DNA of 64,000 nucleotides from Macrostomum lignano (Eukaryota). Under the pieces are notes generated by a model. It was given only the letters and a program-made list of their open reading frames with translations, ran no database searches and was not told where the DNA came from. The translations under genes were made by a program, and so were the position numbers. Shown one piece after another: positions 3,361 through 34,175 of the stretch. The stretch's first letter is position 1, and each line of letters opens with the position of its first letter. The stretch lies in the NCBI GenBank assembly GCA_002269645.1, contig NIVC01001846.1, forward strand, positions 1-64,000. Direction: 5' to 3'.

Positions 3361-3514
3361 ATTGTTAAAATTAATATAGAAAATCAACACAACGAGACAA
3401 ACGTAAAAAACAATAAGTAAAAATTGCAATGCACCAGTGTAATTTAAAAAATACACGAAGAAAAACAGTTTTGAAATCAAATATTTGCCTCGCATTTACA
3501 AAACTGCATTATGC

Positions 3515-6799: not shown

Positions 6800-8215
<1,416 letters not shown>

Positions 8216-10400: not shown

Positions 10401-11920
10401 GCCCTAGATCGTATTATGTTCTAAAAGTCTAAAAATGAAAAAAAGCGTGTAAAGACGGAAACTTTCTTTCGCTACTAATTATTACTTTCGACAAATTGAA
10501 GATTTAACGCGTCGAAAATGTAGGAAGCGTAGACAGTGTAGACATTCTTCCCTGTTTATTTTCTACTTTTTGTTATCAATAATACCAAAAAACAAAAACA
10601 TTTGCGTATATAAACGAAGCGCATAAAGGAACAAATGCCAAAGGAGTGACAGAGAAGTGGCCAGACGGAGGGGAGAGATGAAATTGTAAGCTGGGTATTT
10701 TAGGTTAATGCAGTGCTAAATGCTAAACGCCCAGGCGCATGTGTCTCGCATTTTCGGAAACTGCACGTTCAAATTCGTGTGAGCAAGTAATTAATAGCTA
10801 CATACTTCACGCTGCTCGCGAACATTTGTGACACTAATTATAACTACTGCTTTAACTGCTATAACTGCTACTGCTATAACTATAACTATTGCTGCTGCTA
10901 TTTTACCCACCACGGCTGCTCCGTGTTGGGCAAGTAGCATAAATTTTTAAATATCGAGCTGGTGCTAGATTTAATGTAGGTGGAGTAAGGGAAAGAAAAA
11001 ACTGGTGCTCACATTGCCCAAGTAGGAAATTGCCACGAGCAAGTGTTAGTTTAAGTAGTAAAAAAATAATTCATTTTTTCAATAACTTGCCACACACTGA
11101 AGCTGCTGCACTTGTTGCCGTTTCGTTGTTGGTTTATTGTGCTGTTCTAGATGAATAAATACATTCGTCACATATATGGAATTCCATCATCTATGGTAGT
11201 GTCACTGAAAGGTGTGGAATAATGGCCACATCGATTAATTATTGCTTCTGGCTAAAAGTATACATACAATGAGAGAACACAAGCGTCAGGTAAAATGCAC
11301 AGGTTCGTATAATGGAACAACAAATGTAATTAAGTAGTTGGGCTCCGTAGTAGGATGGGATAAAGCTAGGATAGGCTTAGAAAACGAGGCACAGTTTGCC
11401 ATGAATGAAAAATATACGAATATTTTGTTATGAAAGCAGAAAATGGCAGAAAGGCCCCTTAATTAGAGGCACAAAATGCAGAAAATACTTTTATAAGGGA
11501 TATAAGGCTTCAGTAAAAGGGACTTGCAGCATATTGGAAGTTTACCTGGAGCTGATTACACACGTCTATTTTTATAGGATTAGTTTCATTTTCAGGAAGT
11601 ACTTCCAATAGACAGTATGCCTTTCTTAATCCCGTAAATATAAGGTAGCATAAAAAACATATAGTTAAAATCGTGACATGGGTCAGCTGGCGTTCTGCAG
11701 AAACAATTTTCAACGTGTCCCGATCCGATTTCGTAGCTTCCATTGCGAATAGACGACCTGATCATGTGCTTCTTTCCATACGTTGTTGGACATTAAGTCA
11801 CTTGCACTTTTTCATTCTCTAAGTAGCTAAGTAAAGAAAGGGCAAAAACGATGAGTTGGTGAAGCCATCGTGGGGGGGGCTTCTCAAGGCGGATTTTTCT
11901 GCAACTGTTTCCACCTGGCT

Positions 11921-11925
<5 letters not shown>

Positions 11926-12003
<78 letters not shown>

Positions 12004-12044
12004 GACAGAGAGAGAGACAGAGAGGGAGAGAGAGAGATCCAGAG

Positions 12045-12105
<61 letters not shown>

Positions 12106-12120
12106 TAGATAGAGAGAGAT
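11926..12120. repeat. (GA)n/(GACA)n compound microsatellite
   Basis: Direct reading. Confidence 0.95.
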
Positions 12121-12769
12121 CTGTAGAGGGATAGAGGCAGTTCTCCCTCCATCTGGATCTCTCTTTAATGTAGCCAGACTCCGTGACATACGGAGGGATC
12201 TAGAGTGACAGACGGAAAAGAACATGGACGGTTAATTTATTACGAAACGACTGTGGTAACGTATTCCTTGGGTATATTAAAAGGGTCGACCTTTACAAAC
12301 GAGCTCATTACCCTCGTTAGCCTTTTAACCCTCGAGGGTTGTTACTTTTCCACCCATGGTATGTATAACCACGATCAGTTTCTATGATGCGACGAAGACG
12401 AGGGCCCCATAGGCCTTCCCAGTAGAAACTAAGCCGCCCCCTAGGCGGCTTTGCCGCCTTCGCCAGCACCTCCGACGGTGGCTTCTGCGCTGACGCTGGC
12501 CGCCCGCTCGGCGGCGTTGCCGCCTTCGCTGGCCGCCCCCTCGGCAGCGTTGCCGCCTTCGCTGGCCGCCCCCTCGGCAGCGTTGCCGCCTTCGCTGGCC
12601 GCCCCCTCGGCAGCGTTGCCGCCTTCGCTGGCCGCCACCTCGTCAGCGTTGCCTCCCGAGGATGCTTCACTGACATCGTCGCCGTCGTCGCAGGCGTCGA
12701 CGCCTGCTTCAGCAGCTGTGCCATCCGAGGGCTCCGTGGCGGTGGCCTCGGAGCCCTCGGTGGGAAAAA

Positions 12770-13655: not shown

Positions 13656-14687
13656 TTACACAATGTGCAGCCTGAAGTGCCTCTTCAGATGGCTGCCTTG
13701 ATTGAATCTCCTGCCACACACATTGCACTTAAATGGCTTTTCTCCTGTGTGCACCAATGAGTGCGTAGTCAGGTGAACTTTCTGTTTGAATTGCTTGCCG
13801 CACACCTTGCACTCAAATGGCTTTTCTCCTGTGTGCAGACTTGAGTGGGAAGAGAGATTGCTTGCTTGATTGAATCTTTTGCCGCAAACCTTGCACTCGA
13901 AAGGCTTTTCTCCTGTGTGAAGCCTAGAGTGCTTAGTGAGGCTGCTGCTGTCACTAAATCTCTTGCCGCACACCTTGCACTCAAATGGCTTTTCTCCTGT
14001 GTGCAGCCTTGAGTGGGAAGAGAGGCCCCATGCTTGACCGAATCTCTTGCCGCACACCTTGCACTCGAATGGCTTTTCTCCTGTGTGCACTCTAGAGTGT
14101 GTATTGAGGTCGCTGCTGAAACCGAATCTCTTGCCGCACACCTTGCACTTGTGCGGTTTCGCCTTCTTGTGCACTGCACTAATGTGAGCCTTTAAGTAGC
14201 TTTTTCTGGTGAACTTCTTCTGGCAAGTGTTGCACTGGAACGCCCTCTCGACAGCCTGAGCTTGACGTTGCCGTGTTGCAGCATTGTTCAAAGCTCGGGT
14301 CTTCTCGGCTGACTCGCACTCCGGACTCTTCGTCACTGCAGAACTGCCGGCTGCACACGGCTGCATCGCTGACTCATTGCGAGACTCGACCTGCTCGACC
14401 GCCGCCGCTCTGCCAGCTTCTGAGTTGGTCGCAGCCGCCTCCTCTGGCTCCGAGTCGCAGCCGATACCGTGTGACCGCACATGACGCAAGTACTGCGCCG
14501 CTGCCGATCGGGTGCGGCAGAACCGCCTGGGACAAAAGGGGCAGGCGACAGAGCCCGGGCGCATCTCTGAGAAACTGTGGGGCTGCGATCTGTGCGGAGA
14601 TGCCGATGCTCGAAGCCAGTCTCTGCCTGAGCTGCAATGTGGAGCGGTAGGGACTTCGTCACTTTGTGATCCGGAAATGAAAGACAT
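13656..14687 (-). CDS. ZF4: intact C2H2 zinc-finger protein, 343 aa (N-terminal region, leader finger, 6 fingers)
   Basis: Uninterrupted ORF from ATG 14687; all Cys/His ligands present; ends HFRLHIV*. Confidence 0.92.
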   Translation of the reverse strand: MSFISGSQSDEVPTAPHCSSGRDWLRASASPHRSQPHSFSEMRPGSVACPFCPRRFCRTRSAAAQYLRHVRSHGIGCDSEPEEAAATNSEAGRAAAVEQVESRNESAMQPCAAGSSAVTKSPECESAEKTRALNNAATRQRQAQAVERAFQCNTCQKKFTRKSYLKAHISAVHKKAKPHKCKVCGKRFGFSSDLNTHSRVHTGEKPFECKVCGKRFGQAWGLSSHSRLHTGEKPFECKVCGKRFSDSSSLTKHSRLHTGEKPFECKVCGKRFNQASNLSSHSSLHTGEKPFECKVCGKQFKQKVHLTTHSLVHTGEKPFKCNVCGRRFNQGSHLKRHFRLHIV

Positions 14688-14799
14688 CAAAGGAAGTGAA
14701 CTACACTTATAGCTAGCCTTCCTTCAACTGAAAAACAAGGGCGTCACTGTCTTGAGGGAACCTGCGGGAGTCGCCCTTGACTGAAGGAATTTCTGAGGC

Positions 14800-15400
14800 A
14801 TTTAGCGGATTGAAGCCGTCTGCAGAAAATTGGACATGAAAGACGAGAAGGTTGACGTAGTCTTACTCAAGATTGACTTTTTAATCCTCATGGCGGTAGC
14901 CGCGTATGACAAATTAGGGAACTTCTTGGTCACTCCGGTGAAGTTAGAGGTCAACGCATTCGAGAATCTAGAGGATGAAATCAAGTAGTTTGTCACCTCA
15001 CAAAAACTTGTGCCTGAGCGTCACAGGTTTGACGAAGCGAAGCAAGACGAGTACCCATAAGCATATTTTGAGAACCGACTGCGAGACTGCGACAGATATG
15101 GCATTTGAATACATTCTGCAAGAAGCTCTAAGAGACCAGTTTGTAGCCGGACTGTGCAATGCCTCCGTGGTGAAAGAACTGGTTATTAAAGACCCGTTAA
15201 CATTGATACTTGCGGTGGAGACTGCTGCAGCGCAAAAGCAAGTCAGTAAGAGTGCCTTGACATCAAGGAAAGTTGGAAGCAGTCAATTTAACAAAGGACA
15301 AAATGCGACATCAAAGTAGTGCTCAAGGCCAAATGCGCATTTCGGGCAAGGCGTGCAGTTTTTTAATGAAGAAGCATCTGCCAGAGTCATGCCTGGCATG
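14800..15400 (+). pseudogene. Degenerate Ty3/Gypsy gag remnant (copy 1)
   Basis: Fragments ERHRFDEAKQ and EALRDQFVAGL...LTLILAVETA resemble the Gypsy gag consensus; several stops and frameshifts. Confidence 0.6.
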
Positions 15401-15707
15401 TGGAGCCAAGTGTCGAAACTGTGAGAGAATTACTTGAAGGACTTGGGAGCTGAGCATGCATAAGTGCCTCTGAGAAATGTTTTACACAACAGCAATCGCA
15501 TTTACCACTCTATAGTTTACGAGTATTCGGCAGGTGAAATTTAAATAAGAGAATGGCTGTGTTTGGAACACTATCAAAACAATTTCATTTTTTACTAAGT
15601 TATCTAATAATTAAAAATCATCTAAAAAGGTAAATTCTAAAAAAGTTCAATGGTTCAAAGTTCTAAAAAAGTGGCAGGGTGACTGGTAGAGTGGCAGTGG
15701 AGTCCTA

Positions 15708-16058
15708 GGGTGGCTAAGGAGAGTCTTAGGGTGGGTTGGGTGAGTAAAAGGGTGGCTAGGAAGAGTCTTAGGGTGGGTTGGGTGAGTAAAAGGGTGGCTA
15801 GGGAGAGTCTTAGGGTGGGTTTGGTGAGTAAAAGGGTGGCTAGGGAGAGTCTTAGGGTGGGTTGGGTGAATAAAAGGGTGGCTAGGGAGTGTCTTAGGGT
15901 GGGTTTGGTGAGTAAAAGGGTGGCTAGGGAGTGTCTTAGGGTGGGTTGGGTGAGTGATAGGGTGGCTAGGGAGAGTCTTAGGGTGGGTTGGGTGAGTGAT
16001 AGGGTGGCTAGGGAGAGTCTTAGGGTGGTTTGGGTGAGTGATAGGGTGGCTAGGGAGA
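15708..16058. repeat. 42-bp G-rich minisatellite, second locus (~8 copies)
   Basis: Same unit family as 1-788, followed by the same flank GAGACAGCTGCATTCCACAGTTTACCTGTG. Confidence 0.95.
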
Positions 16059-17204
16059 GGAGACAGCTGCATTCCACAGTTTACCTGTGAAGAAACTGGG
16101 GTCGGTCCGGGTGCCCAACCCAAGTACTATAAAAAAAGTAGGAAAAGGCGTAGTGACGCTTTGTGATACAGTAGCTCGATCTGGCGTGAAGAAGTTCAGA
16201 AGTTGCGTTGCTACCATTATTGTTGTGACACTCGCTGGTTCTTATAAAGTGCCTACCGTAAGATATAGTATAGGATATTGGTGAGTAACGAGTATATGAC
16301 TCACGTGTGTACTCTGTACAAGCAACTGGCAAAATATACGGAACTCCTGACATATCAAGCTATCAACCCTAAACTATTGCTGCTGGTATCTTTTATACCG
16401 CAGTGTCAACTAATTTTACCGGACTTTGATCGGTGCTTCGGTCAACTCAAGAAAGTTAAATTTACCTCTAAGATGCGCACAATAAAAGCTGCAAAGCGAG
16501 CCAATCGAAACGGCGCAAGCAGTGTGAGACTCTCCTGCCCTGACAGACCCCGAGGGCCCATGCACTACACGTGGTTTGTTAAAATTAATATAAAAAATCA
16601 ACAAATCCAGGCAAACATTAAAAAATAACAAGTGAAGATTGCAATGCCGCAATTGTAATTCAAAAATACATGAAGAAAAGCAAGTTTTGAGATCAAATTT
16701 TAGCTTGGCGTTTACAAAACTCAATCGCGGAGACACTATAATAACAATCATTACAGAAATTCTTGTAGAAGTTAAAATAAGTCAAACGTAAAATATGGGT
16801 GCTGACTCGCTGAGTAATACAGAAAACAAAGAAATACTCTTAAGATGCAAACAACAAATTGAAACCTTTGGCAGCAACAAGAAAGTGAAACACTTTCCTG
16901 TCTAGAATGTCCTGTGAATGTCATGTGTCCCGTTAATGTCCTGTCTAGCAGTACAGTCAATAAAGGTGCTTAATTAAAAGAGAAGATGCTTCAAACCAAT
17001 CAGTGGCTACTCAGACTGACCAACTGACCATTGGTTCAGCTACGGTATGCATTACTTTTGGACAATTCAAGGATGATCATTAAAATTTACAGACAAAAAA
17101 GGCTGTTAATGGATTGCCAGTGACTTAAAAACGCGTGGCGAACACTCAGAACTCTGACTCGGTAGTTCACTTCTGCAGTCAAGGAGGGCAAAGTTTAATA
17201 TTCG

Positions 17205-18790
17205 TTACACAATGTGCCGATTAGCGTGCGTTTTTAGATGGCTGCCTTGATTAAATCGCTTGCCGCACACCTTGCACTCAAATGGTTTTTTCTCCTGTGT
17301 GCACTCTAGAGTGAGTAGTGAGGTTGGAGATCTGGTTGAATCTCTTGCCGCACACCTTGCACTCAAATGGTTTTTCTCCTGTGTGCACTCTAGAGTGAGT
17401 AGTGAGGTTGGAGATCTGCTTGAATCTCTTGCCGCACACCTTGCACTCAAATGGTTTTTCTCCTGTGTGCACTCTAGAGTGAGTAGTGAGGTTGGAGATC
17501 TGCTTGAATCTCTTGCCGCACACCTTGCACTCGAATGGCTTTTCTCCTGTGTGAAGCCTAGAGTGCTTAGTAAGGCTGCTACTGTCACAAAATCTCTTGC
17601 CGCACACCTTGCACTCAAATGGCTTTTCTCCTGTGTGCAGCCTTGAGTGGGAAGAGAGATTGCTTGTTTGATTGAATCTTTTGCCGCAAACCTTGCACTC
17701 GAAAGGCTTTTCTCCTGTGTGAAGCCTAGAGTGCTTAGTGAGGCTGCTGCTGTCACTAAATCTCTTGCCGCACACCTTGCACTCAAATGGCTTTTCTCCT
17801 GTGTGCAGCCTTGAGTGGGAAGAGAGGCCCCATGCTTGACCGAATCTCTTGCCGCACACCTTGCACTCGAATGGCTTTTCTTCTGTGTGAAGCCTAGAGT
17901 GCTTAGTGAGGCTGCTACTGACACTAAATCTCTTGCCGCACACATTGCACTCAAATGGCTTTTCTCCTGTGTGCAGACTTGAGTGGGAAGAGAGATTGCT
18001 TGCTTGATTGAATCTTTTGCCGCAAACCTTGCACTCGAAAGGCTTTTCTCCTGTGTGAAGCCTAGAGTGCTTAGTGAGGCTGCTGCTGTCACTAAATCTC
18101 TTGCCGCACACCTTGCACTCAAATGGCTTTTCTCCTGTGTGCAGCCTTGAGTGGGAAGAGAGGCCCCATGCTTGACCGAATCTCTTGCCGCACACCTTGC
18201 ACTCGAATGGCTTTTCTCCTGTGTGCACTCTAGAGTGTGTATTGAGGTCGCTGCTGAAACCGAATCTCTTGCCGCACACCTTGCACTTGTGCGGTTTCGC
18301 CTTCTTGTGCACTGCACTAATGTGAGCTTTGAGGTGGCTTTTTCTGGTGAACTTCTTCTGGCAAGTTTTGCACTGGAACGCCCTCTCGACAGCCTGAGCT
18401 TGACGTTGCCGTGTTGCAGCACTGTTCAAAGCTCGGGTCTTCCCGGCTGACTCGCACTCCGGACTCTTCGTCACTGCAGAACTGCCGTCTGCACACGGCT
18501 GCATCGCTGACTCATTGCGAGACTCGACCTGCTCGACCGCCGCCGCTCTGCCAGCTTCTGAGTTGGTCGCAGCCGCCTCCTCTGGCTCCGAGTCGCAGCC
18601 CATTCCGTGTGACCGCACATGACGCAAGTACTGCGCCGCTGCCGATCGGGTGCGGCAGAACCGCCTGGGACAAAAGGGGCAGGCGACAGAGCCCCGGCGC
18701 ATCTCTGAGAAACTGTGGGGCTGCGATCTGTGCGGAGATGCCGATGCTCGAAGCCAGTCTCTGCCGGAGCTGCAATGTGGAGCAGTAGAC
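17205..18790 (-). CDS. ZF5: longest paralog (leader plus 13 fingers); 5' end replaced, 1-nt frameshift before last finger
   Basis: ORF 17278-18702. T6 instead of T5 at 17286-17291 shifts off the terminal finger NQGSHLKTHANRHIV. Homology to paralogs stops at ~18787, so the first ~13 codons are absent. Confidence 0.7.
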
Positions 18791-19965
18791 TATCTTAATC
18801 ACTTGTCGGATCCGTTTGTAATCTGGGATTGAAAACATCAAAAAGAACTAAACTACATGTATGCTTTCTGATTTTGAGAACATAAAGACGATAGCTGGGT
18901 TACATCAACAAATAAATAGCCTAACTTTATATAAACATCTATGAAAGTGATACATGTAAATATAGAATGCATGCTATACTTGAATTTGCGACAGTCAATT
19001 TTCGATGAAGATTCAAGCGTGTGAAAATCTTGCTGCTAATCGAGAATGTGCCCGGGTACATCTGCTGTACCGATAAGAAATCCTTGGCACTCGTCAGGAG
19101 GGCCTGGCATTGCACTCTTACTCCTTTCAGCCGCGTCTACACCAAACTCACCCAGTTACATCCCTTCCCATTCTGTTTGAAGGGTCCCTCTGCTGCATTC
19201 CAAATGCTGTCTACCCGTTTCAGACGGCTCGGGAAATTAAAAAGGAGAACCCACTGCCCTAGACCTGGGAGCTTAGCATGAATGCATTCAAGCAAAGCAA
19301 AAAAGTGAAATTCCAACTCCATAGCTTATTTTACTAATGAAACTAATGAACAAGAGGATTATGAAGGCAAATTCATTCTATAATAATAAGATTGTGCAGT
19401 CATCAGTGTAAGAGGCAACAGTGTGCTGAAGGGCAGTCATGGAAACGGTAATTTGGCTTAACCTGTTGACTGTCTTGGCAGCCATTAAAACCTACATTCT
19501 AGCTGCAACTCAACTCAACTTTTTTCCAAAGGACTCTGCGGCACGGCTCAGAGGTTCTCTCTGTCTCGCTGCCGCTCTGCTGCCCGGCTCGATGCCCTGA
19601 CAGCTGAGCAATCATGCCAATGACAACAGCTGCATTCGACATTTTACGTGGCCTATTAAAATCTCTATATCAAAACAATAATACAAACATCAAGACAAAT
19701 ATTAAAACAAAACAAAGACTTCAATGCCACCGGTATAATTTATAAAAACAGCAAACATCAACTTCCTTTGGCAGCAACAGCTCATCAGTGCAACAACTTC
19801 CTAATGCATTCTTCAGAAAAATTTAACAAAAATCATTAATACAAAGAACAAAAAGTTGTTAAGAGACTGCGAATAAATTGAAAACGCGTGGAGCACAGGA
19901 AGAACAAATATCCGGAGTCTATTTCAGCGATCACATAACACGAAACTGAATATTCTCTACAAAAC

Positions 19966-21156
19966 CTACTGCTTGGAGTGCCTCTTCAGTATGCTGGCTT
20001 TATTTAGTATCTTGCTGCACACCTTGCACTCAAATGGCTTTCCTCCTGTATGCAGTCTTGAGTGAGAAGTGAGGTTGCTGCGGTGACGAAATCTCTTGCC
20101 GCACACCTTGCAATCAAATGGCTTTTCTCCTGTGTGCAGCATTGAGTGCTTAGTGAGGCTGTAACCGTACCTCAATCTCTTGCCGCACACCTTGCACTAA
20201 AATGGCTTTTCTCCTGTGTGCACCCTGCAGTGTGCAGTGAGGTTGCTCCTACGACGAAATCTCTTGCCGCACACTTTTTACTCAAATGGCTTTTCTCCTG
20301 TGTGCACTCTAGAGTGTGTAGTGAGGTTGACGATCTGGTTGAATCTCTTGCCGCACACCTTGCACTCAAATGGCTTTTCTCCTGTGTGCACCCTGCAGTG
20401 TGCAGTGAGGTTGCTCCTACGACGAAATCTCTTGCCGCACACTTTGCACTCAAATGGCTTTTCTCCTGTGTGCAGCATTGAGTGCCTGGAGAGGCTGCAG
20501 TTGTCATTGAATCTCTTGCCGCACACATTGCACTCAAATGGCCTTTCTCCTGTGTGCACTCTAGAGTGAGTAGTGAAGTTGCTGCTGCGACTGAATCTCT
20601 TGCCGCACACCTTGCACTTGTGCGGTTTCACCTTCATGTGCACTGCACTAATGTGAGCCTTTAGGTAGCTTTTTCTGGTGAACTTCTTCTGGCAAGTGTC
20701 GCACTGGAACGCCCTCTTGACACCCTGAGCTTGACGTTGCCGTGTTGCAGCACTCTTTGAAGCCCGGGTGTTCCCGAATGTCTCGAACTCGTGACGCTTC
20801 GTCACTGCAGAACTGCCGTCTGCACACGGCTGCATCGCTGACTCATTGCGAGACTCGACCTGCTCGACCGCCGCCGCTCTGCCAGCTTCTGAGTTGGTCG
20901 CAGCCGCCTCCTCTGGCTCCGAGTCGCAGCCCATTCCGTGTGACCGCACATGACGCAAGTACTGCGCCGCTGCCGATCGGGTGCGGCAGAACCGCCTGGG
21001 ACAAAAGGGGCAGGCGACAGAGCCCCGGCGCATCTCTGAGAAACTGTGGGGCTGAGATCTGTGCGGAGATGCCGATGCTCGAAGCCCGTCTCTGCCTGAG
21101 CTGCAATGCGGAGCGGTAGGGACTTCGTCACTTTGTGATCCGGAATGGAAAGACAT
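19966..21156 (-). pseudogene. ZF6: zinc-finger gene with two premature stops (292-aa product; leader plus 8 fingers if read through)
   Basis: ATG 21156; TAA at 20278-20280 (PFE*K) and TAG at 20197-20199 (PF*CK); fingers continue to 19966. Confidence 0.8.
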
Positions 21157-21720
21157 CTAAAGGAAATGAACATCCCCAATATCGAAAACATAAAGACAAT
21201 TTCTGGGTTATATTGACTAATAAAAAGCATAATTTTCTATTTTATGAAAGTGATGAAAATCCCATGCATGCTTTACTTGAATTTAAGACAACCAATTGAT
21301 GATGGATTTAACCGAGTGAAAATGTTGCTGCTAAACGACATGACGTGCATGGTTAAATTTACACTGAGGAGCAATCCTTGGCTCATGAGAGATAGTGAGC
21401 CAAAGCGGGTTTTACCGGGTTTCGATTGGTGTTTTAGCTAAATCAAAATAAACAGTTTTTTATTTAATTATCGCTAGACTGCCTGGCAGGACCCATTGAT
21501 TTCTGCCACTTGTACTGCAACTTTGCGCGACTGAACAATTTAAGGTGGATGCGCAAACCCGGAGCGAAATACTAAAAAGCCGTAACAAAAAAGGTGGGTA
21601 GGCGGCCCCACCGGCTAAGACGAGCAAAGCTCAAAGGCCAGCCAATCGAAACGGTACAAGAAGCAGTGTGAGACTCTGCTGCCCTGACAGACCCCCAAGG
21701 ACACATGCACTACACGTGGA
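21157..21720 (-). promoter_or_regulatory. Putative ZF6 promoter, non-coding exon 1 and intron 1
   Basis: CCAAT at 21642-21646, TCAGTC at 21529-21534 (minus), donor-like CCG/GTAAAA at 21415, and pyrimidine tract plus TAG directly before ATG 21156. Donor-like motif present in 5 of 6 homologous flanks. Confidence 0.4.
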
Positions 21721-21888
21721 TTGTTAAAATTAATATAGAAAATCAACACAACGAGACAAACGTAAAAAACAATAAGTAAAAATTGCAATGCCACCAGTGT
21801 AATTGAAAAAATACACGAAGAATAGCAGTTTTGAAATCAAATATTTGCCTCGCATTTACAAAACTGCATTATGCTTAAAACATTCTGA

Positions 21889-22828
<940 letters not shown>

Positions 22829-23289
22829 TAGCTGAGTCTTACGTAAAAAAAAAGAGATTAGACAGTAATTTTTAATGGACATTTTACTGGGTGAAAGGTT
22901 ATTGCTAAACGGCAATGTGACCGGGTACATCTGCATTGATGAGCAATCCTTGGCCCCCGGTTAAGAAGGCCGGCAGTGCACTTTTACCTCTCCCCGCCAC
23001 GTCTACCCCAAACTGACCCAGTTGCACCGCCTCATTTTTCTGTCTGTATCATCTTGCTGCGTTCCTAATTCTGCGTGCTTATTTGAGACGGTTTGGGAAA
23101 TTAAACAAAACGGCGCGTTTTAAGCTGCCGAGTGTCAATGTACATCATCATTTAGAATTGCTAGCTGAGCAGCACGATCGTGAAACTTCTGTCTGTTTGG
23201 CTCTGGACGAACTGAAAAAAACAAGGGCGTCACTGTCTTGAGGGAACCTGCGGGAGTCGCCCTGGACTGAAGGAATTTCTGAGGCATTT

Positions 23290-23890
23290 AGCGGATTGAA
23301 GCCGTCTGCAGAAAATTGGACATGAAAGACGAGAAGGTTGACGTAGTCTTACTCAAGATTGACTTTTTAATCCTCATGGCGGTAGCCGCGTATGACAAAT
23401 TAGGGAACTTCTTGGTCACTCCGGTGAAGTTAGAGGTCAACGCATTCGAGAATCTAGAGGATGAAATCAAGTAGTTTGTCACCTCACAAAAACTTGTGCC
23501 TGAGCGTCACAGGTTTGACGAAGCGAAGCAAGACGAGTACCCATAAGCATATTTTGAGAACCGACTGCGAGACTGCGACAGATATGGCATTTGAATACAT
23601 TCTGCAAGAAGCTCTAAGAGACCAGTTTGTAGCCGGACTGTGCAATGCCTCCGTGGTGAAAGAACTGGTTATTAAAGACCCGTTAACATTGATACTTGCG
23701 GTGGAGACTGCTGCAGCGCAAAAGCAAGTCAGTAAGAGTGCCTTGACATCAAGGAAAGTTGGAAGCAGTCAATTTAACAAAGGACAAAATGCGACATCAA
23801 AGTAGTGCTCAAGGCCAAATGCGCATTTCGGGCAAGGCGTGCAGTTTTTTAATGAAGAAGCATCTGCCAGAGTCATGCCTGGCATGTGGA
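23290..23890 (+). pseudogene. Degenerate Ty3/Gypsy gag remnant (copy 2)
   Basis: Identical ORF-track peptides to 14800-15400. Confidence 0.6.
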
Positions 23891-24237
23891 GCCAAGTGTC
23901 GAAACTGTGAGAGAATTACTTGAAGGACTTGGGAGCTGAGCATGCATAAGTGCCTCTGAGAAATGTTTTACACAACAGCAATCGCATTTACCACTCTATA
24001 GTTTACGAGTATTCGGCAGGTGAAATTTAAATAAGAGAATGGCTGTGTTTGGAACACTATCAAAACAATTTCATTTTTTACTAAGTTATCTAATAATTAA
24101 AAATCATCTAAAAAGGTAAATTCTAAAAAAGTTCAATGGCAGAAGAAATGGGTTAAGAGAAGTTGCCGAACAGTTTGCAGGGTAGGTAGGGTGAAAATTG
24201 GAGTGGCAGGGTGACTGGTAGAGTGGCAGTGGAGTCC

Positions 24238-24462
24238 TAGGGTGGCTAAGGAGAGTCTCAGGGTGGGTTGGGTGAGTGATGGGGTGGCTAGGAAGAGTCT
24301 TAGGGTGGGTTTGGTGAGTAAAAGGGTGGCTAGGGAGTGTCTTAGGGTGGGTTGGTGAGTAAAAGGGTGGCTAGGGAGTGTCTTAGGGTGGGTTTGGTGA
24401 GTAAAAGGGTGGCTAGGGAGTGTCTTAGGGTGGGTTGGGTGAGTGATAGGGTGGCTAGGGAG
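24238..24462. repeat. 42-bp G-rich minisatellite, third locus (~5 copies)
   Basis: Same unit and flank as 15708-16058. Confidence 0.95.
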
Positions 24463-26659
24463 AGGAGACAGCTGCATTCCACAGTTTACCTGTGAAGAAA
24501 CTGGGGTCGGTCCGGGTGCCCAACCCAAGTACTATAAAAAAAGTAGGAAAAGGCGTAGTGACGCTTTGTGATACAGTAGCTCGATCTGGCGTGAAGAAGT
24601 TCAGAAGTTGCGTTGCTACCATTATTGTTGTGACACTCGCTGGTTCTTATAAAGTGCCTACCGTAAGATATAGTATAGGATATTGGTGAGTCACGAGTAT
24701 ATGACTCACGTGTGTACTCTGTTCAAGCAACTGGCAAAATATACGGAACTCCTGACATATCAAGCTATCAACCCTAAACTATTGCTGCTGGTATCTTTTA
24801 TACCGCAGTGTCAACTAATTTTACCGGACTTTGATCGGTGGTTCGGTCAACTCAAGAAAGTCAAGTTTACCTCTAAGACGCGCACAATAAAAGCTGCAAA
24901 GCGAGCCAATCGAAACGGCGCAAGCAGTGTGAGACTCTCCTGCCCTGACAGACCCCCGAGGGCCCATGCACTACACGTGGTTTGTTAAAATTAATATAAA
25001 AAATCAACAAATCCAGGCAAACATTAAAAAATAACAAGTGAAGATTGCAATGCCGCAATTGTAATTCAAAAATACATGAAGAAAAGCAAGTTTTGAGATC
25101 AAATTTTAGCTTGGCGTTTACAAAACTCAATCGCGGAGACACTATAATAACAATCATTACAGAAATTCTTGTAGAAGTTAAAATAAGTCAAACGTAAAAT
25201 ATGGGTGCTGACTCGCTGAGTAATACAGAAAACAAAGAAATACTCTTAAGATGCAAACAAAAAATTGAAACCTATAGCAGCAACAAGAAAGTGAAACACT
25301 TTCCTGTCTAGAATGTCCTGTGAATGTCATGTGTCCCGTTAATGTCCTGTCTAGCAGTACAGTCAATAAAGGTGCTTAATTAAAAGAGAAGATGCTTCAA
25401 ACCAATCAGTGGCTACTCAGACTGACCAACTGACCATTGGTTCAGCTACGGTATGCATTACTTTTGGACAATTCAAGGATGATCATTAAAATTTACAGAC
25501 AAAAAAGGCTGTTAATGGATTGCCAGTGACTTAAAAACGCGTGGCGAACACTCAGAACTCTGACTCGGTAGTTCACTTCTGCAGTCAAGGAGGGCAAAGT
25601 TTAATATTCGTTACACAATGTGCCGATTAGCGTGCGTTTTTAGATGGCTGCCTTGATTAAATCGCTTGCCGCACACCGTGCACTCAAATGGTTTTTCTCC
25701 TGTGTGCAGCCTTGAGTGAGAAGAGAGGCTGCTGCTGAAACTGAATCTCATGCCGCACACCTTGCACTCGAAAGGCTTTTCTCCTGTGTGCACCCTGGAG
25801 TGCTTAGTGAGGTTGCTGCTGTCACCAAATCTCTTGCCGCACACCTTGCACTCAAATGGTTTTTCTCCTGTGTGAAGCCTAGAGTGCTTAGTAAGGCTGC
25901 TACTGTCACAAAATCTCTTGCCGCACACCTTGCACTCAAATGGCTTTTCTCCTGTGTGAAGCCTAGAGTGCTTAGTAAGGCTGCCACTGTCACAAAATCT
26001 CTTGCCGCACACCTTGCACTCAAATGGCTTTTCTCCTGTGTGCAGACTTGAGTGGGAAGAGAGATTGCTTGCTTGATTGAATCTTTTGCCGCAAACCTTG
26101 CACTCGAAAGGCTTTTCTCCTGTGTGAAGCCTAGAGTGCTTAGTGAGGCTGCTACTGTCACAAAATCTCTTGCCGCACACCTTGCACTCAAATGGTTTTT
26201 CTCCTGTGTGAAGCCTAGAGTGCTTAGTAAGGCTGCTACTGTCACAAAATCTCTTGCCGCACACCTTGCACTCAAATGGCTTTTCTCCTGTGTGCAGCCT
26301 TGAGTGGGAAGAGAGGTTGCTGCGGCGACTGAATCTCTTGCCGCATACCTTGCACTCAAATGGCTTTTCTCGTGTGTGCAGCCTTGAGTGGGAATAGAGG
26401 CTCCATGCTTGACTGAATCTCTTGCCGCACACCTTGCACTTGTGCGGTTTCGCCTTCTTGTGCACTGCACTAATGTGAGCCTTTAAGTAGCTTTTTCTGG
26501 TGAACTTCTTCTGGCAAGTGTTGCACTGCCCGGGAAAAAAAAACATGCTAAACTTTCCAAGTCAACCATGTACTTGGATGAAATTGTTGACTTACCAAGT
26601 TTGCAAAGTATCATTGTCATGTACTTAAAAAGTATGCAATGTTTTTACCCAACTTCAAT

Positions 26660-27250
26660 CGACTTTCCAAGTTTGCAAAGTACACTTCCGATGTCTACAT
26701 CTAAGTACTTAGAAAGTATCCAAAGTAGAGCCTACTTGGTTCGACTTTCCAAGTTTGCAAAGTACACTTCCGATGTCTACATCCAAGTACTTAGAAAGTA
26801 TCCAAAGTAGAGCCTACTTGGTTCGACTTTCCAAGTTTGCAAAGTACACTTCCGATGTCTACATCCAAGTACTTAGAAAGTATCCAAAGTAGAGCCTACT
26901 TGGTTCGACTTTCCAAGTTTGCAAAGTACACTTCCGATGTCTACATCCAAGTACTTAGAAAGTATCCAAAGTAGAGCCTACTTGGTTCGACTTTCCAAGT
27001 TTGCAAAGTACACTTCCAATGTCTACATCCAAGTACTTAGAAAGTATCCAAAGTAGAGCCTATACTTGGTTCGACTTTACAAGTTTGCAAAGTACACTTC
27101 CGATGTCTACATCCAAGTACTTAGAAAGTATCCAAAGTAGAGCCTACTTGGTTCGACTTTCCAAGTTTGCAAAGTACACTTCCGATGTCTACATCCAAGT
27201 ACTTGGAAAGTATCCAAAGTAGAGCCTACTTGGTTGACTTTCCAAGTTTG
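26660..27250. repeat. 82-bp subterminal tandem repeat (~7 copies)
   Basis: CAAAGTAGAG recurs at 26721, 26803 and 26885. Confidence 0.93.
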
Positions 27251-28790
27251 CAAAATCCGTACATACACCTTTTTTACCAGCAGAATAACAGCTTTTATTT
27301 AGCTGACATCGCTCCCACTCACAAAAAATGATTATATGGCTATTCCTCGGAATTTTTGGATTCCTGAATACAGCTGAATACAGCTACAGCAATACATCCC
27401 GAAGGTGTCTGTATTTTTCTTTGGGAAGATTTATGAGCTTGGCTAGCTGCATCATCAAAGCTAGTTTTCTGTAAAAGGCAAACATTCTTTTGGATTGCAT
27501 AATTTACATGAAAAGACTCTATAAATACATTTACACAATTGCACATTGCAAGACTTTAATACTTTTACTAATCTATTTTGATAAAAATTTTAGGAAGTTT
27601 TGCTAAAATATCAGTATTTACTGATTCTTGAGTGTTTGTTTCACTAACAAATGAAATGAATATTACATCTTATATTGTTTGGGCAAATGATTATTATCTA
27701 ATTTGTTTAAACTGTCAAAATTCGAAATGAAAATTCTAATTTTCGCTTTCGCATAGGTTTGTGTAAAATTGTCCTTTTATCTTTCTTTTCAAAGTTAGGC
27801 TTTAGTTAGATAGGCCTTTTAGCAATTATTTGTTGCCGATTTTATTTCATATAGTAGTTGATATACCTTGTCGCTCAACAATTGGCTGACTATAGTTATT
27901 GTAATTGACATTTTATATGGCCCAGTAGGCCAGCCTACCCACTATGCCCTATACTGGCTATAGGCATAGGCCTGCCTTCTTGGCTTTAACTAGATCTAGA
28001 AGTTTTTTAGGGGGCTAATATTATAGTCATATGGGCTTAGTATAATACTGATACTGACTCAGAATATAAATATAGATAAAATTTTAAAACTGACTTTTGT
28101 GAGTTGTGACTTAAGAATTATTGTCTTGATCTGCATAATGGTTAGTAGGCCTATATTTATAGGAAAAATCATCTGGCCTCCCTTATCTAACCTTGACCTT
28201 GTTTACAGTTTTGCCTTTTAGCTTCTGTTTTTAATCTTCAGTTTCAGATTTAATGTCATTGTAAAAAGTGCAAGAAATGCTTCAGAGTAAAAATACTTTG
28301 TTTTTTTACTTTTAGTTTTAGACAGCTAGACTAGAATTATCCAGGCTATGTTATTAATTTTGATTGCACATTTTTTACTTTTATTATTGATAATAGATTA
28401 GTAATAATAATATTGTTTTATTAAGTCTTAGGATATATGTTGATTAGGCCCTATTGTAATTATAATCATTCTAATAAATTGTCTTTTGCTTATTAGAAAT
28501 ATAATATAAGCCTAGTTAGTTTTTAATTATAAGCCTAGAAGTATTTAAACATAAAATTTTATTTTTAGTTTATAGAATATTTTTATTTTTAGTAATTTGA
28601 TGATTTAGATTTTAAGATCAGAAAATTAAGCAATTTATAATAAAAAAATATTTAAGTATATTTATGAACTATGTAATGTTGTATTATTGGTCTATTAAGG
28701 ACAAGGCCTAAATTAAATTTTTATTTAAAAGCAAAGTAATATTTTTGTTTGGAATATATTTAGATTTCAATACTTTCTACATTTTATAAT

Positions 28791-29527
28791 GGCAGTGCTT
28801 ATCCCCACGGTACCGTAGGAATAATTTCTGTCTTATTCCAACGGTACCGTGCGAATAATTTTCTGCTTATCCACACGGCACACTGAGGAGATAGCTGCCC
28901 TATCTTCTACATATGCCGTGCGAATAATTTTCTGCTTATCCGCACGGCACACTGATGAGATAGCTGCCCTATCTTCTACATATGCCGTGCGAATAATTTT
29001 CTGCTTATCCGCACGGCACACTGACGAGATAGCTGCCCTATCTTCTACATATGCCGTGTGGGAAGTTTAGTACATACGATTTGAGTGCAGTATAACAACT
29101 TTGTTGAATTATTGTTGAATAAGTATACAGAAGGGTATCAGTAAAGCAGAATAACACGCATTTACGCATGCATATACTAGTCTAGAACTGATTCGAGTTT
29201 ATACATCAAGATCAACAGCTTCTTAGTATCCTCAGTTCAAATTCCCTTTCAATAAGCTATAAACTATTCACGCACAGCATATATATGTAGCAGATAAAAA
29301 CCGATAGGGCAGCTAGTAAAGCAGAGGGAATAAAACAGAGGACGTGTAGGGCAGCTATCTCGTCAGTGTGCCGTGCGGATAAGCAGAAAATTATTCCCAC
29401 GGCATATGTAGAAGATAGGGCAGCTATCTCGTCAGTGTGCCGTGCGGATAAGCAGAAAATTATTCGCACGGTACCGTTGGAATAAGACAGAAATTATTCC
29501 TACGGTACCGTGGGGATAAGCACTGCC
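28791..29527. mobile_element. Mutator-like MITE, 737 bp, nested in the CMC-like element
   Basis: Long TIRs (~185 bp) starting GGCAGTGCTTATCCCCACGGTACC; perfect 9-bp TSD TTTTATAAT (28782-28790, 29528-29536); 69-bp internal units (3 left, 2 right). Confidence 0.9.
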
Positions 29528-30269
29528 TTTTATAATATCTATATCTATACATCTATAGATACATCTATACATACATCTATAAAAATATTTTAAAGACTTA
29601 TTTATTACATTCAAAAAAAAGATTGCTATTAGTCTCAAAATAGTAATTATATTATAAAGTGCATTTACTTGGCATTTCTTTAGATTAAGAACTATTACCT
29701 GGGTAAAACTTACATGGTTTAATTTTTTTGTGAAATATCCAATTATTCATATTCACTTAAATTTCCATTTCAGCTACCATCTACAAATGTCATCATCTAT
29801 ATTAAAAAAACCTGCTGAAAACAATGAAGATTTGTTAGCTGTATAATTGTACATTTTTTACTAATTTTGTTCAAAAAAATTGGCACCTGACTAAGCAATT
29901 TATTTTTTATGCTGCTTTTTCTTTGTCTTGCATTTTTCTGCCTGTGATCATCTGAATAATTTGTTAAGTTGCAACTTTTATGTGCATCAATACTTTGAAT
30001 ACAATATAACAGTACACTTAACAATTATTTTGAAGCTCCTATTGCTTGTTGAATTTTTTCTTTAACAAGTGAAATTCTGTATGATGGAATTATTTTTTGT
30101 TCTTTGTAACTTTTGCAAGTCCATGGTATGAGTTATCAACATTTTGCCAAGTGCTCTATAGATAAATTAGATATTTAATACATTCACACTTGGAACCATA
30201 TACTTTCTAGTAAATAAGTCACCTAAATCAATTTGAAATGTGATAAGTATTTATAGCTCTTGTGAACAT

Positions 30270-30760
30270 TGCATACTTGGAAGGTACTTGAAAAGTGATT
30301 TAAGAAAACATTGCATACTTGGAAAGTACTTGAGAAGTGACTTGAGAAAACATAGCATACTTGGAAAGTACTTGAGAAGTGACTGGAGAAAACATAACAT
30401 ATTTGGAAAGTACTTGAGAAGTGACTGGAGAAAACATTGCATACTTGGAAAGTACTTAAGAAGTGACTGGAGAAAACATTACATACTTGGAAAGTACTTG
30501 AGAAGTGACTGGAGAAAACATTGCATACTTGGAAAGTACTTGAGAAGTGACTGGAGAAAACATTGCATACTAGGAAAGTACTTAAGAAGTGACTGGAGAA
30601 AACATTACATACTTGGAAAGTACTTGAGAAGTGACTGGAGAAAACATTGCATACTTGGAAAGTACTTGAGAAGTGACTGGAGAAAACATTGCATACTTGG
30701 AAAGTACTTGAGAAGTGACTGGAGAAAACATTGCATACTTGGAAAGTTTATTGAGTGTAC
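30270..30760. repeat. 42-bp subterminal tandem repeat (~11 copies; ACTTGGAAAGTACTTGAGAAGTGACTGGAGAAAACATTGCAT)
   Basis: Direct reading; 14-aa periodic ORF. Confidence 0.93.
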
Positions 30761-31853
30761 TTGGAAAACTTAGAAAGTACTTAGGCCACGAGGTTGCATT
30801 GTTGACTTACCAAGTACTTAGCAAGTTTGGTTTGTTTTATTTTCTCGGGTGGAACGCCCTCTCGACAGCCTGAGCTTGACGTTGCCGTGTTGCAGCACTG
30901 TTCAAAGCTCGGGTCTTCTCGGCTGACTCGCACTCCGGACTCTTCGTCACTGCAGAACTGCCGGCTGCACACGGCTGCATCGCTGACTCATTGTGAGACG
31001 CGACTTGCTCGACCGCCGCTTTGACAGCTTCTGAGTTGGTCGCAGCCGCCTCCTCTGGCTCCGAGTCGCAGCCCATTCCGTGTGACCGCACATGACGCAA
31101 GTACTGCGCCGCTGCCGATCGGGTGCGGCAGAACCGCCTGGGACAAAAGGGGCAGGCGACAGAGCCCCGGCGCATCTCTGAGAAACTGTGGGGCTGCGAT
31201 CTGTGCGGAGATGCCGATGCTCGAAGCCAGTCTCTGCCTGATCTGCAATGCGGAGCGGTAGGGACTTCGTCACTTTGTGATCCGAAATGGAAAGACATCT
31301 AAAGGAAATGAACATCCCAGATATCGAAAACATAAAGACAATTGCTGGGTTATATTGACAAATTTAAAGCAGAATTTTGTATTTTATGAAAGTGATAAAA
31401 ATCCCATGCATGCTTTACTTGAATTTAAGACAACCAATTGATGATGGATTTAACCGAGTGAAAATGTTGCTGCTAAACGGCATGATGTGCATGGCAAAAT
31501 TCACACTGATGAGCAATTTATCATGATTAAAACATTCTGATTAGAGAATGTTTGTAAAAAGTTAGATGAATTTAAATGAGTACTGAAAATGCGTGAGTAC
31601 TAATACAATAAGTAATGAAGTGAAAAACTGAAAATGCTGGAAACCAATCAGTTACTGAGATACTGAGACTAACAGGTCATTGGATGCTGTAACTAACTGG
31701 CTATTGAATCCGCTTTCATTGACATTTTTGGGACAGTTCTTAATACGTACAGCCAAAAAAGCTGCTGATCTACTGCTAGTGAATTGAAAATGCCTGGCGC
31801 ACAGTAAGGACCCAGACGTAGTGGCAATCACGGAGCGCAAAGTTTAATATTCA

Positions 31854-32589
31854 TTAAACAATGTGCTGCTTGGAGTGCCTTTTCAGATCGCTGCCTTAAC
31901 TGAATCTTTTGCATAACACCTTGCACTCGAATGGCTTTTTCCTGTGTGCACCCTGGAGTGCTTAGTGAGGTTGCTGCTGTCACTAAATATCTTGCCGCAC
32001 AGCTTGCACTCAAACGGCTTTTCTCCTGTGTGCAGTCTTGAGTGAGAAGAGAGGTTGCTGCGGCGACTGAATCTCTTTCTGCACACCTTGCACTCAAATG
32101 GCTTTTCTCCTGTGTGCACCCTGGAGTGCCTAATGTGGCTGCTGCTGACACTAAATCTCTTGCCGCACACCTTGCACTTGTGCGGTTTCGCCTTTATGTG
32201 CACTGCACTAATGTGAGCCTTTAGGTAGCTTTTTCTGGTGAACTTCTTCTGGCAAGTTTTGCACTGGAACGGTCTCTCGATGCCCTGAGCTCGACGGTGT
32301 CGTGTTGCAGCACTCTTTGAAGCTGGGGTCCTCTCGACTGACTCACACTCGTGACGCTTCATCACTGCAGAACTGCCGGCTGCACACGGCTGCATCGCTG
32401 ACTCATTGTGAGACGCGACTTGCTCGACCGCCGCTCTGACAGCTTCTGAGTTGGTCGCAGCCGCCTCCTCTGGCTCCGAGTCGCAGCCCATTCCGTGTGA
32501 CCGCACATGACGTAAGTACTGCGCCGCTGCCGCTAGGGTGCGGCAGAATCGCCTGGGACAAAGGGGGCGGGCGACAGATACCCGGGGCA
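31854..32589 (-). pseudogene. ZF9: 5'-truncated zinc-finger pseudogene (leader plus 4 fingers)
   Basis: Homology starts at ~32589; -1 frameshift at ~31938 and TAA at 31896-31898, both shared with ZF3. Confidence 0.85.
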
Positions 32590-34175
32590 TTATCTGCAGT
32601 TTGCATGGACAGAAGCAAGATAGTACAACAGTTGTAGTGTAGAGATTTAGAAAAGAAAAGAAGGGAAGGAAAGAGCTAGGGGGTGGCTTTTATTTACAAT
32701 AACAATTGTAGCAATAAATCTTTGGCATTGAAATCTACTCCAAGTTATGAGCATATTTTTAGTCCAACTGCAGGGCAATCTTATAGATATTAAATTGTTA
32801 AAAAGCATAAATTATACCTTTTTTCTCTCTATATTTTCACCATATTTTTCTCATAGTCTATCTGTATCTACATCCATAGCTAGTAAACTTTCTATAACTG
32901 TAGGATATACATATATTACACTGAGACCTAAACTATGATAGATGCCTTGAAGAGGCAACTGAATGCTATGCTTGCGACCATGCTGCATGTAGTATTCAGA
33001 GTATGTAGCAATCTAGGTAGCAAGACCAATGCCACACTATACAAGGGTACACTAGATATGGCCTTTTGATCTATTTTTTGGGTGACCTACCTTGCTCTAT
33101 AGACAAATAGACTACTTATGCATATATGTTAGGCTAATATACTATGCATATACACACTATTGTGGCATCAAAAGTCTCTGTTTCCTACGTCTTCAAATCT
33201 TTATAGGGATCTAAGAGCTCTTTAAAAGTGATAAAACATTCCATCTTAACTTTAGCCCTTATCACCTAACTACCAGTATGACCATCAAAAATATAAATAA
33301 TTAATCTAAATATACTAAATCTCTAATATAGTACTAAAAATAGCTTAGACAAAATCAAACAACAAATACCATTTAGATAGAATAAAATTAAGTAAAAAGT
33401 TAGAATTTATATAACAATAAATATGTTGAGTTATTCATATTGTTTTTAGAGTTAAAAACTTCAAATAGGGGCCTATTTTAACCTAATGAGACAAAAGTAG
33501 ACATTGCTTTTAGCAAAGGAAAAAATATATATAAAACACTCATGGCAATAAAGTAAATAATTGTCACTGCAATAGGATAGGATAAAAACTTGTATAGTCA
33601 ATGGTAAATTAAATGAAATAAATAAGATTTTAACAAGATGGCTAGAATCAATCAATGGATAATTTAAAAAGATCATAAAAATATTATAGAAAGTCATTGA
33701 CTACTTTTTCATAATGGTATTAATTAAACTATTCAATTTAATGAAAATAAACTAAATATTTAAGACTTTTCAAATAATTTATTAATTTATTCTTACTTCT
33801 TTATATAGGAGATAGTTGGCTACATGGTATATCAATTTGTCAGTTCAATTTATTGATTGATTTTTCAACTTTGTTGTCTATTCTTATAAACAATTTTAGC
33901 AACTAGTAAACTATAAAATGGCTTTATGGCTATCAAGCGCATAGCTAGGATTCTTGTTAGAGGAGGATAAAAACATAAATCTATCTCCAATAGAAACAAT
34001 AGAAGCCAAACACAAAGGTAGAAAAAAGTTTTCCCTTTAGCAGGTAGTGTTGGGCACTATTAATAAAAATCTTAACTCATGTTAATGGCAAAAATGTTAG
34101 CATTAAAACAAAAAAAATTTTTTTATTTTTATTTGTTTTGTTTGCTAAAAATTAACTGATAATTGTTATTAAGCA

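Follow-up and report, generated by a model that had tools for sequence, protein, structure and literature searches.

PRDM9 carries zinc fingers encoded by an 84-bp repeat, and the number and order of these fingers are altered by register-shifted recombination. In the tetrapod KRAB zinc-finger (KRAB-ZNF) genes, the KRAB domain and the fingers are encoded on separate exons. Duplication through unequal crossing-over or gene conversion has been invoked for the KRAB-ZNF clusters (PMC5363842; PMC2443715), and the finger sequences of mouse KRAB-ZFP paralogs diverge by "drifting and shifting" (PMC5363842). The cyprinid FiNZ genes (zebrafish chromosome 4) combine a lineage-restricted N-terminal region with fast-diversifying arrays and lie in large tandem clusters (PMC10547256). 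The rapid evolution of poly-zinc-finger clusters via exchange between finger repeats is already well documented in mammals and fish. Here, we describe such a cluster in the flatworm Macrostomum lignano and one of its genes, ZF5, which is a chimera of two gene types, T2 and T1. The window analysed is the first 64 kb of NIVC01001846.1, an 84.6-kb contig of the Mlig_3_7 assembly. We consider it likely that the cluster evolves by non-allelic homologous recombination (NAHR) and that the 3' block of the T2/T1 chimera ZF5 was copied or converted from a T1 gene resembling ZF8, another gene of the cluster.

About 10 C2H2 zinc-finger genes were found in the window, every one intronless and on the minus strand (Table 1). 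A pattern search in the first 33 kb detected about 75 C2H2 fingers, 74 on the minus strand and one on the plus strand. The genes are built on one plan, in which 4-14 finger units of 84 bp come after a family-specific N-terminal region of ~150 aa, and the fingers have the form C-X2-C-X12-H-X3-H of Krueppel-type poly-C2H2 proteins. Tandem Repeats Finder (TRF) reported a period of 84 in every finger array, and 53-56 of 57 units keep the linker TGEKPFE (codons 22-28). For ZF4, the Pfam scan gave zf-C2H2 (E = 5e-36) and zf-H2C2_2 (E = 2e-48), with zinc-finger families only and neither KRAB (PF01352) nor a SET domain found. The proteins nearest to ZF4 are models of the BOX15_Mlig series. For comparison, the loci L001, L003, L004 and L005 on other Mlig_3_7 contigs were reached via annotated proteins, while L002 (NIVC01001846.1:1-12741) is the contig itself, its reverse complement being identical to window 1-12741; all comparison loci come from one assembly and one PacBio data set. 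Mosaic structure was called from unit-by-unit Hamming distances and register comparisons, with the invariant framework common to different finger types (at most ~45 nt) as the chance baseline.

Three gene types, T1, T2 and T3, recur across these loci. T1 genes end in GDSSNLT-SFSSSLS-NQGSHLKT and are followed by a flank block named S, a 42-bp minisatellite and a 376-nt segment named X. T2 genes end in HVSSNLTK and have a different flank, and T3 genes end in NQGSHLKRH. The L003 locus runs T2 (ZF3), flank, T1, S, X and T3.

The joint between the two types in ZF5 was located in its last linker. When ZF3 and ZF8 are taken as parents, the first 16 informative sites of ZF5 are all of ZF3 type and the 39 that follow are all of ZF8 type (Fisher P = 3e-14). 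The switch falls within 17303-17258, where the parents are identical, with the parental types on either side, as expected of an NAHR or unequal-crossover chimera. Upstream of the joint the finger order is unrelated to that of ZF8, which bears out an earlier prediction made from the same DNA (the original prediction) that the two arrays differ from the next finger onward. Unit 13 of ZF5 equals unit 8 of ZF3 except for one extra A, and among the loci compared the adjacency NQISNLTT/NQGSHLKT occurs in ZF5 only. The terminal finger of ZF5 has 1 mismatch in 84 nt to that of ZF8 and 0 to those of the T1 genes of L001, L003 and L005. The original prediction gave ZF5 and ZF8 the same helix in this finger; the finger is nearly identical in DNA, with the qualification that it is out of frame in ZF5. 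The last linker reads GGAGAAAAAACC (6 A) in ZF5 and GGAGAAAAACC (5 A) in ZF8 and ZF3, and because of the extra A the long open reading frame (ORF) of ZF5 stops early (Table 1). The extra A may have been left behind by the event, or it may be a homopolymer error. In the assembled sequence the frameshift deprives ZF5 of its terminal finger, and the canonical ATG region upstream of the gene is corrupted.

A further observation concerns the start of these genes. Every annotated protein of the family starts at SGRD, right past ...CATTGCAG (window ~18760-18790 and equivalents), and conservation between paralogs climbs sharply at this point. Trans-splicing is common in M. lignano (PMC5730564). A spliced-leader trans-splice acceptor may lie at the SGRD point; the real start codon would then be the Met of MRRGSV.

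The non-coding DNA upstream of ZF5 was compared with that of other genes. It is 97.0% identical to the upstream DNA of the T2 "gene b" (L001:15202-16601 and L005:8563-9963) and 95.4% identical to that of the T2 "gene a", while ZF5 and ZF8 share at most 73% over 173 nt upstream. Compared with the T1 genes of L001, L003 and L005, the last three fingers of ZF8 show 0, 0 and 1 mismatches; since they match T1 genes on three contigs, the ending of ZF8 is the ancestral one. The N-terminal coding regions are 94-98% identical across the family and therefore carry no lineage signal. The 98% identity of the ZF5 and ZF4 N-terminal regions had been considered as special kinship, which was rejected because of this family-wide level, ZF5 being also 98.1% identical to L004:7114. 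The T2-lineage upstream DNA, the T1 ending of ZF8 and the single joint together argue that ZF5 is a T2/T1 chimera and not a whole-gene duplicate. By these alignments, ZF5 is a T2 gene in which a T1 terminal finger and flank have taken the place of the original 3' end. The description of ZF5 and ZF8 as near-identical duplicates could not be upheld, because near-identity is limited to the terminal finger and 3' block and the upstream DNA belongs to different subfamilies. The difference between the two arrays would accordingly be due to descent and one recombinant joint, not to turnover after duplication.

The array of ZF5 upstream of the joint is itself a mosaic. An exact tract of 383 nt is shared with ZF4, while the adjoining 461 nt upstream contain 13 differing sites (2.8%), 5 of them in finger 1; at this divergence a 383-nt exact run has a probability of ~2e-5. 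The original prediction equated the first four fingers of ZF5 with those of ZF4. Finger 1 has to be removed from this statement, since it differs in 5 nt and 2 residues, while fingers 2-5 are identical in DNA; finger 1 of ZF4 is identical to finger 1 of ZF8. The block GQAWGLSS-SDSSSLTK-NQxSNLSS does occur twice in ZF5, in copies 336 bp apart that match exactly over 214 nt, and TRF reports a 336-bp higher-order period. At an offset of 84, a 113-nt exact run was detected (17532 to 17420 = 17448 to 17336). Every joint in ZF5 lies in invariant framework or linker, and the duplications keep strictly to multiples of 84 bp without a mismatch, in agreement with the proposed exchange through the 84-bp repeat.

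The 3' blocks of ZF5 and ZF8 were aligned end to end (global, 14560-17300 vs 22990-25710). The aligned copies A (14726-17300) and B (23210-25706) lie 8,484 bp apart and form a common block of ~2.5 kb with the terminal finger, the 3' flank, the 42-bp minisatellite and further flank. The sharing that had been described is real, while its extent of ~1.1 kb was too small. Excluding the minisatellite, S_A (the copy behind ZF5) and S_B (the copy behind ZF8) are 99.2-99.9% identical: they differ by 10 substitutions and 1 indel across the proximal 1.2 kb and by 1 substitution and one 2-nt indel in a T run across the distal 0.93 kb (925 nt), and the minisatellite between these parts has 8.4 copies in A vs 5.4 in B. 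With further copies used for polarisation, B has at least 5 private differences and A at least 2. In the alignment of A, B, L001, L003 and L004, the usual order is S, X and the 5' end of a ZF gene, which is seen in L001, L003, L004 and B, and X is absent from A. Beyond X, the ZF 5' ends, namely that of ZF4 and the remnant at 22833-22735 with which ZF7 begins in copy B, show 4 differences in ~100 sites. The patch of high identity is thus bounded on both sides, by unrelated array order past the joint and by a change from 1/925 nt before the X deletion to 4/~100 after it (a small distal sample). Because near-identity is limited on both sides, the S_A/S_B patch fits a tract of non-allelic gene conversion. 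S_A had also been considered as a non-homologous insertion beside ZF4, with a sharp end at 14726; this was revised, since the alignment with L001, L003 and L004 shows that A merely lacks X.

The 42-bp minisatellite sits in the 3' flank of T1-type genes, at window 2-788 (18.7 copies) and in S_A and S_B. The contig starts inside the first of these arrays, which suggests that the assembly broke there. Short ORFs at 14830-15437 on the plus strand, antisense to the ZF genes, lie in the best-conserved distal part of S (99.9% between A and B). No Pfam match was found for the plus-strand ORF 14975-15319 and its neighbours. The short ORFs may resemble retroelement gag.

Alternatively, ZF5 and ZF8 with their flanks might be recent duplicates, the arrays of which were then remodelled by unequal exchange faster than substitutions accumulated in the flanks. 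The near-identity of the 2.5-kb blocks and the perfect in-register duplications are consistent with such a history, and several paralogs show changes of this kind. T2 pairs with 700-nt 3' flanks of 96.3-98.5% identity differ by 5-9 finger edits, while pairs with 100% identical flanks have an array edit distance of 0-1. ZF8 and the T1 gene of L003 have proximal flanks of 99.6% identity and 11 vs 6 fingers, and ZF5 differs strongly in its array from the L001 gene b, to which its 5' flank is 97% identical. However, arrays also stay unchanged at comparable divergence. L005:1-6465 differs from window 6462 to 1 at 13 positions, 7 of them 1-nt indels, with identical ZF1 and ZF2 arrays. L003:209-5384 differs from window 9762 to 4572 by 19 substitutions and 2 indels (0.4%), and ZF3 and its L003 copy have ten fingers in the same order with one array substitution. 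The six-finger T1 arrays of L001 (10397-10903) and L003 (6037-6543) are identical in finger types at 3' flanks of 92.9% (a 7% difference). In contrast to the T2 arrays, this six-finger array gives the impression of being under constraint. For L001, L004 and the remainder of L005, the paralogs are at 92-95%. The evidence for a faster turnover of arrays than of flanks in this family is therefore mixed: the T2 pairs and ZF8/L003 support the predicted rate difference, while the ZF5/ZF8 contrast, ZF3/L003 and the L001/L003 T1 arrays do not. Since flank identity is itself patchy, flanks are a poor clock here. Recent duplication with remodelling is also opposed by the end of near-identity at one clean joint in the last linker, by upstream DNA of different subfamilies, and by the retention of the ancestral T1 ending in ZF8 while ZF5 has ZF3-type units. 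We regard it as improbable; the comparisons point instead to the T1 terminal block as a later addition to a T2-derived ZF5.

The chimeric make-up of ZF5 can be described as follows. The upstream DNA and array backbone come from the T2 subfamily (ZF3-like genes), and register-shifted exchange within the array generated the 4-finger and 1-finger duplications. One exchange in the ~45 nt of common linker joined a ZF3-type unit to a T1 terminal finger with its 2.5-kb 3' block. This block was probably copied or gene-converted from a ZF8-like T1 gene in recent time, with ends in the finger linker and near the deleted X. Two histories would fit equally well. In one, a single template-switch copy with a homologous proximal and a non-homologous distal joint would explain both the loss of X and the 11 unmatched nt. 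In the other, an NAHR deletion within a T2-flank-T1 unit would have formed an older T2/T1 fusion, and S would have been homogenised later. Duplication of the entire interval by one simple unequal crossover of ZF8 with a ZF3-like gene was rejected: the ZF3 and ZF5 upstream regions have only short matches of ~72-75%, and their N-terminal regions are ~94% identical (88% with gaps, BLAST). Within the interval that a simple crossover with ZF8 would duplicate, near-identity was seen for the terminal finger and S only, and the rest is not present twice at such identity.

The quality of the assembly has to be weighed here. Mlig_3_7 was built by Canu from PacBio reads and polished by Pilon with Illumina and RNA-seq reads (PMC5730564). 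The M. lignano genome has three subgenomes with a single-nucleotide polymorphism divergence of about 1.4-2.4%, more than one mapping locus exists for 93% of read pairs, and scaffolds classed as chimeric make up 36% of the assembly length, chimeric or redundant scaffolds being numerous (PMC10733133). A chimeric join, the collapse or expansion of homeologous or haplotypic copies, or polishing with multi-mapping reads could accordingly have produced the S_A block or its junctions, and the animal would then have neither the near-identity nor this 3' end of ZF5. The contig start inside a minisatellite, the presence of the S_A junctions in this contig only and the frameshift by a 1-nt homopolymer difference speak for such a case. 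On the other hand, both copies carry private substitutions and unequal numbers of minisatellite copies, the joints are clean and in register, and both S_A junctions lie within 2.6 kb, which is probably below the PacBio read length. Other contigs repeat the adjacent stretches of the window, with the same arrays and at 99.3-99.8% identity. A and B were also suspected to be allelic haplotypes stitched in tandem. Such an origin would need allelic sequence on either side of S, while homology of at least 99% covers only 2.5 kb with sharp ends and the neighbours of S_A and S_B are non-allelic; this explanation was abandoned as the main one. An artefact in the block or its junctions is quite improbable in our judgment. 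The region deserves a flag in Mlig_3_7, with the gene models of ZF1, ZF5 and ZF8 to be treated as provisional.

Several points weigh against the chimeric origin with copying from a ZF8-like gene. The donor of the S_A block is ambiguous, because S_A, S_B and L003 are equally close over the proximal 700 nt (99.6-99.7%), above the 97.0-98.4% found when all of the proximal 1.1-1.2 kb is counted. More than one history fits the data, formally including a larger duplication in recent time after which the neighbours were overwritten. Both S_A junctions are seen only in this contig, and all comparison loci share its PacBio data set and assembly. The N-terminal regions lack a lineage signal, and a search for independent support with the frame-corrected peptide of ZF5 fingers 9-14 returned nothing closer than 71%.

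Table 1. Positions of the zinc-finger genes and of the recombination-related features in the window.
Feature	Position	Strand	Remarks
ZF1	1779-2798	-	
ZF2	3515-4456	-	
ZF3	6872-8187	-	
ZF3 array, T2 type	6872-7797	-	Unit 8 (NQISNLTT) supplies the type of ZF5 units 11-13; same array in the L003 copy
ZF4	13656-14690	-	344-aa ORF, 7 fingers; terminal finger T3-type NQGSHLKRHFRLHIV; directly downstream of S_A; without upstream segment X
Distal junction of S_A	14715-14725	-	11 nt (GAAGGAAGGCT, minus strand) where X is expected; homology returns at 14714 with the ZF4 5' end
S_A, 3' flank block of ZF5	14726-17204	-	Minisatellite 15707-16059, 8.4 copies; near-identical to S_B
ZF5	17205-18702	-	
ZF5 terminal finger, T1 type	17205-17276	-	NQGSHLKTHANRHIV + stop; +1 out of frame relative to the rest of ZF5
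Crossover interval, ZF3-type/T1-type joint	17258-17303	-	~45 nt of framework and linker, same in both parents; holds the A run with the extra A
ZF5 long ORF	17278-18702	-	474 aa; family N-terminal region and 13 in-frame fingers; ends in TGEKTI and stop
84-bp register-shift duplications, ZF5	17336-17532	-	KQISNLTT, KQISNLTT, NQISNLTT
4-finger-offset internal duplication, ZF5	17668-18217	-	18004-18217 = 17668-17881, 214 nt, 0 mismatches, offset 336 bp
ZF5/ZF4 exact tract	17945-18327	-	383 nt; = ZF4 13807-14189; end of finger 1 through finger 5
ZF5 upstream non-coding DNA, T2 lineage	18800-20198	-	1.4 kb; compared with T2 upstream DNA in L001, L004 and L005
ZF6	20029-21156	-	
ZF7	21889-22833	-	N-terminal region reduced to a 5' remnant
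X, upstream/promoter-type segment	22834-23209	-	376 nt; after S in B, L001, L003 and L004; absent after S_A
S_B, 3' flank block of ZF8	23210-25610	-	Minisatellite 24239-24464, 5.4 copies
ZF8 finger array	25611-26528	-	11 fingers, of which the final three form the ancestral T1 ending; contains an exact run of 132 nt (offset 336)
AT-rich insertion in ZF8	26529-30849	.	4.3 kb; splits ZF8, parting the N-terminal region from finger 1; imperfect terminal inverted repeats CCCGGGAAAAAAAAAC... / ...GTTTTATTTTCTCGGG
ZF8 N-terminal coding region	30850-31298	-	ORF ends in ...ERAFHPRK and stop at the insertion
ZF10	31883-32590	-	

Other parts of the cluster show further rearrangements. The insertion in ZF8 contains subterminal tandem repeats of 82 bp x7 (26659-27254) and 42 bp x11.5 (30265-30747) with an apparent 2-bp TG duplication, and it looks like a non-autonomous DNA transposon. 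An older segmental duplication relates window 1833-3918 to 20191-22277 (93.5% identity over 2.1 kb; ZF2-ZF1 corresponding to ZF7-ZF6), and the arrays of ZF2 and ZF7 both run into a fragment of the N-terminal region. In ZF7 (22600-22833), ~100 nt of a ZF 5' end (22833-22735) are followed by an inverted ZF6-like fragment of fingers 1-2, to which the plus-strand finger at 22655-22717 belongs, and then by a 7-finger array; an inversion breakpoint thus lies within the gene, and ZF7 is probably a pseudogene. The annotated model of ZF1 (P0004; L002 10001-10963) spans 963 nt for 292 aa, and its 84-nt "intron" (window 2091-2174) removes exactly one degenerate finger, in which a His is replaced by Tyr. 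This could be a paralog transcript, a collapsed transcript assembly or real splicing. Beyond the cluster (47127-51546, 59717-61006 and 38077-41674) lie adjacent ORFs with ankyrin repeats (834 aa) and an ion-transport domain (625 aa), resembling a transient receptor potential (TRP) channel, as well as a mariner-type transposase ORF and RNase H/integrase fragments of a long terminal repeat retroelement.

Change within arrays was also seen at the other loci. The T2 gene b at L001 17284-17619 (also L005 10646-10981) carries four consecutive SDSSSLTK units with 0 mismatches and a 319-nt exact run at offset 84, which is a very recent in-register unit amplification, and the same gene also has two identical GFSSDLNT units. 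This 319-nt run and the 132-nt run in ZF8 reveal outside ZF5 the process that is seen within it. Across finger units, the ratio of non-synonymous to synonymous substitution rates (dN/dS) is 0.15 in the framework and 1.1-1.35 in the helix, a contrast that is the usual signature of poly-zinc-finger genes.

The N-terminal region (ZF4 14235-14690 and its paralogs) contains CPFCPRRFC...HVRSH, a CxxC...HxxxH-like motif, and no Pfam family was found for it. It is 94-98% identical between paralogs whose non-coding flanks are 85-95% identical. A search of 1.84 billion proteins with the 152-aa region returned 7 representative proteins, six from M. lignano and one weak repetitive match from anchovy. No description of the M. 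lignano zinc-finger family or of its N-terminal region was found in the literature. By analogy, and tentatively at a level at which we would sooner doubt than expect it, the cluster and its continuation on at least 4 other contigs may represent an undescribed Macrostomum-restricted family with its own ~150-aa N-terminal region, a higher-order T1/T2/T3 array and possibly a KRAB/FiNZ-like role. If so, the proteins might, for example, repress transposable elements, repeats making up over half of the genome, and chimeras such as ZF5 would be raw material for an arms race of binding specificity.

The flatworm case extends the pattern of finger-repeat exchange to Platyhelminthes, with joints resolved to ~45 nt. 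It also means that a near-identical flank in such clusters is no evidence of a recent whole-gene duplication, because the flanks are themselves patchworks. As in known chimeras of tandem paralogs formed by NAHR or gene conversion, the joint of ZF5 lies in a short common stretch, and a patch of high identity is bounded by lower identity. ZF5 differs from them in that no reciprocal product is identifiable and that the distal end of S_A lies at a 376-nt deletion with 11 unmatched nt; because of this end, a template-switch or non-homologous joint fits as well as a simple conversion tract.

The arrays resemble that of PRDM9 in their 84-bp repeat with register-shifted change. However, ZF4 has no PR/SET or KRAB match in its scan, PRDM9 is a single locus while the Macrostomum genes form a many-gene cluster, and the Macrostomum units are old diverged types common to several genes, with a framework proportion of synonymous differences (pS) of 0.30 (synonymous substitution rate, dS, 0.38; unique units), and not a near-homogeneous minisatellite. 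The FiNZ genes show a comparable plan of an independent N-terminal region and an array; their N-terminal part is a 28-aa acidic cyprinid motif (PMC10547256), in contrast to the ~150 aa in Macrostomum, and no cyprinid relative was among the 7 matches of a search whose query was the Macrostomum region and not a FiNZ profile. From the tetrapod KRAB-ZNF clusters the present one differs in that no KRAB was found in the ZF4 scan, in its intronless genes and flatworm host, and in N-terminal relatives confined to M. lignano save the weak fish match. It resembles the clusters on human chromosome 19 and in mouse as a lineage-specific tandem set of poly-C2H2 genes with a conserved N-terminal region, and its fingers likewise combine a conserved framework with variable helix residues. 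Among such gene clusters, the recombinant origin of ZF5 is an ordinary mode of evolution.

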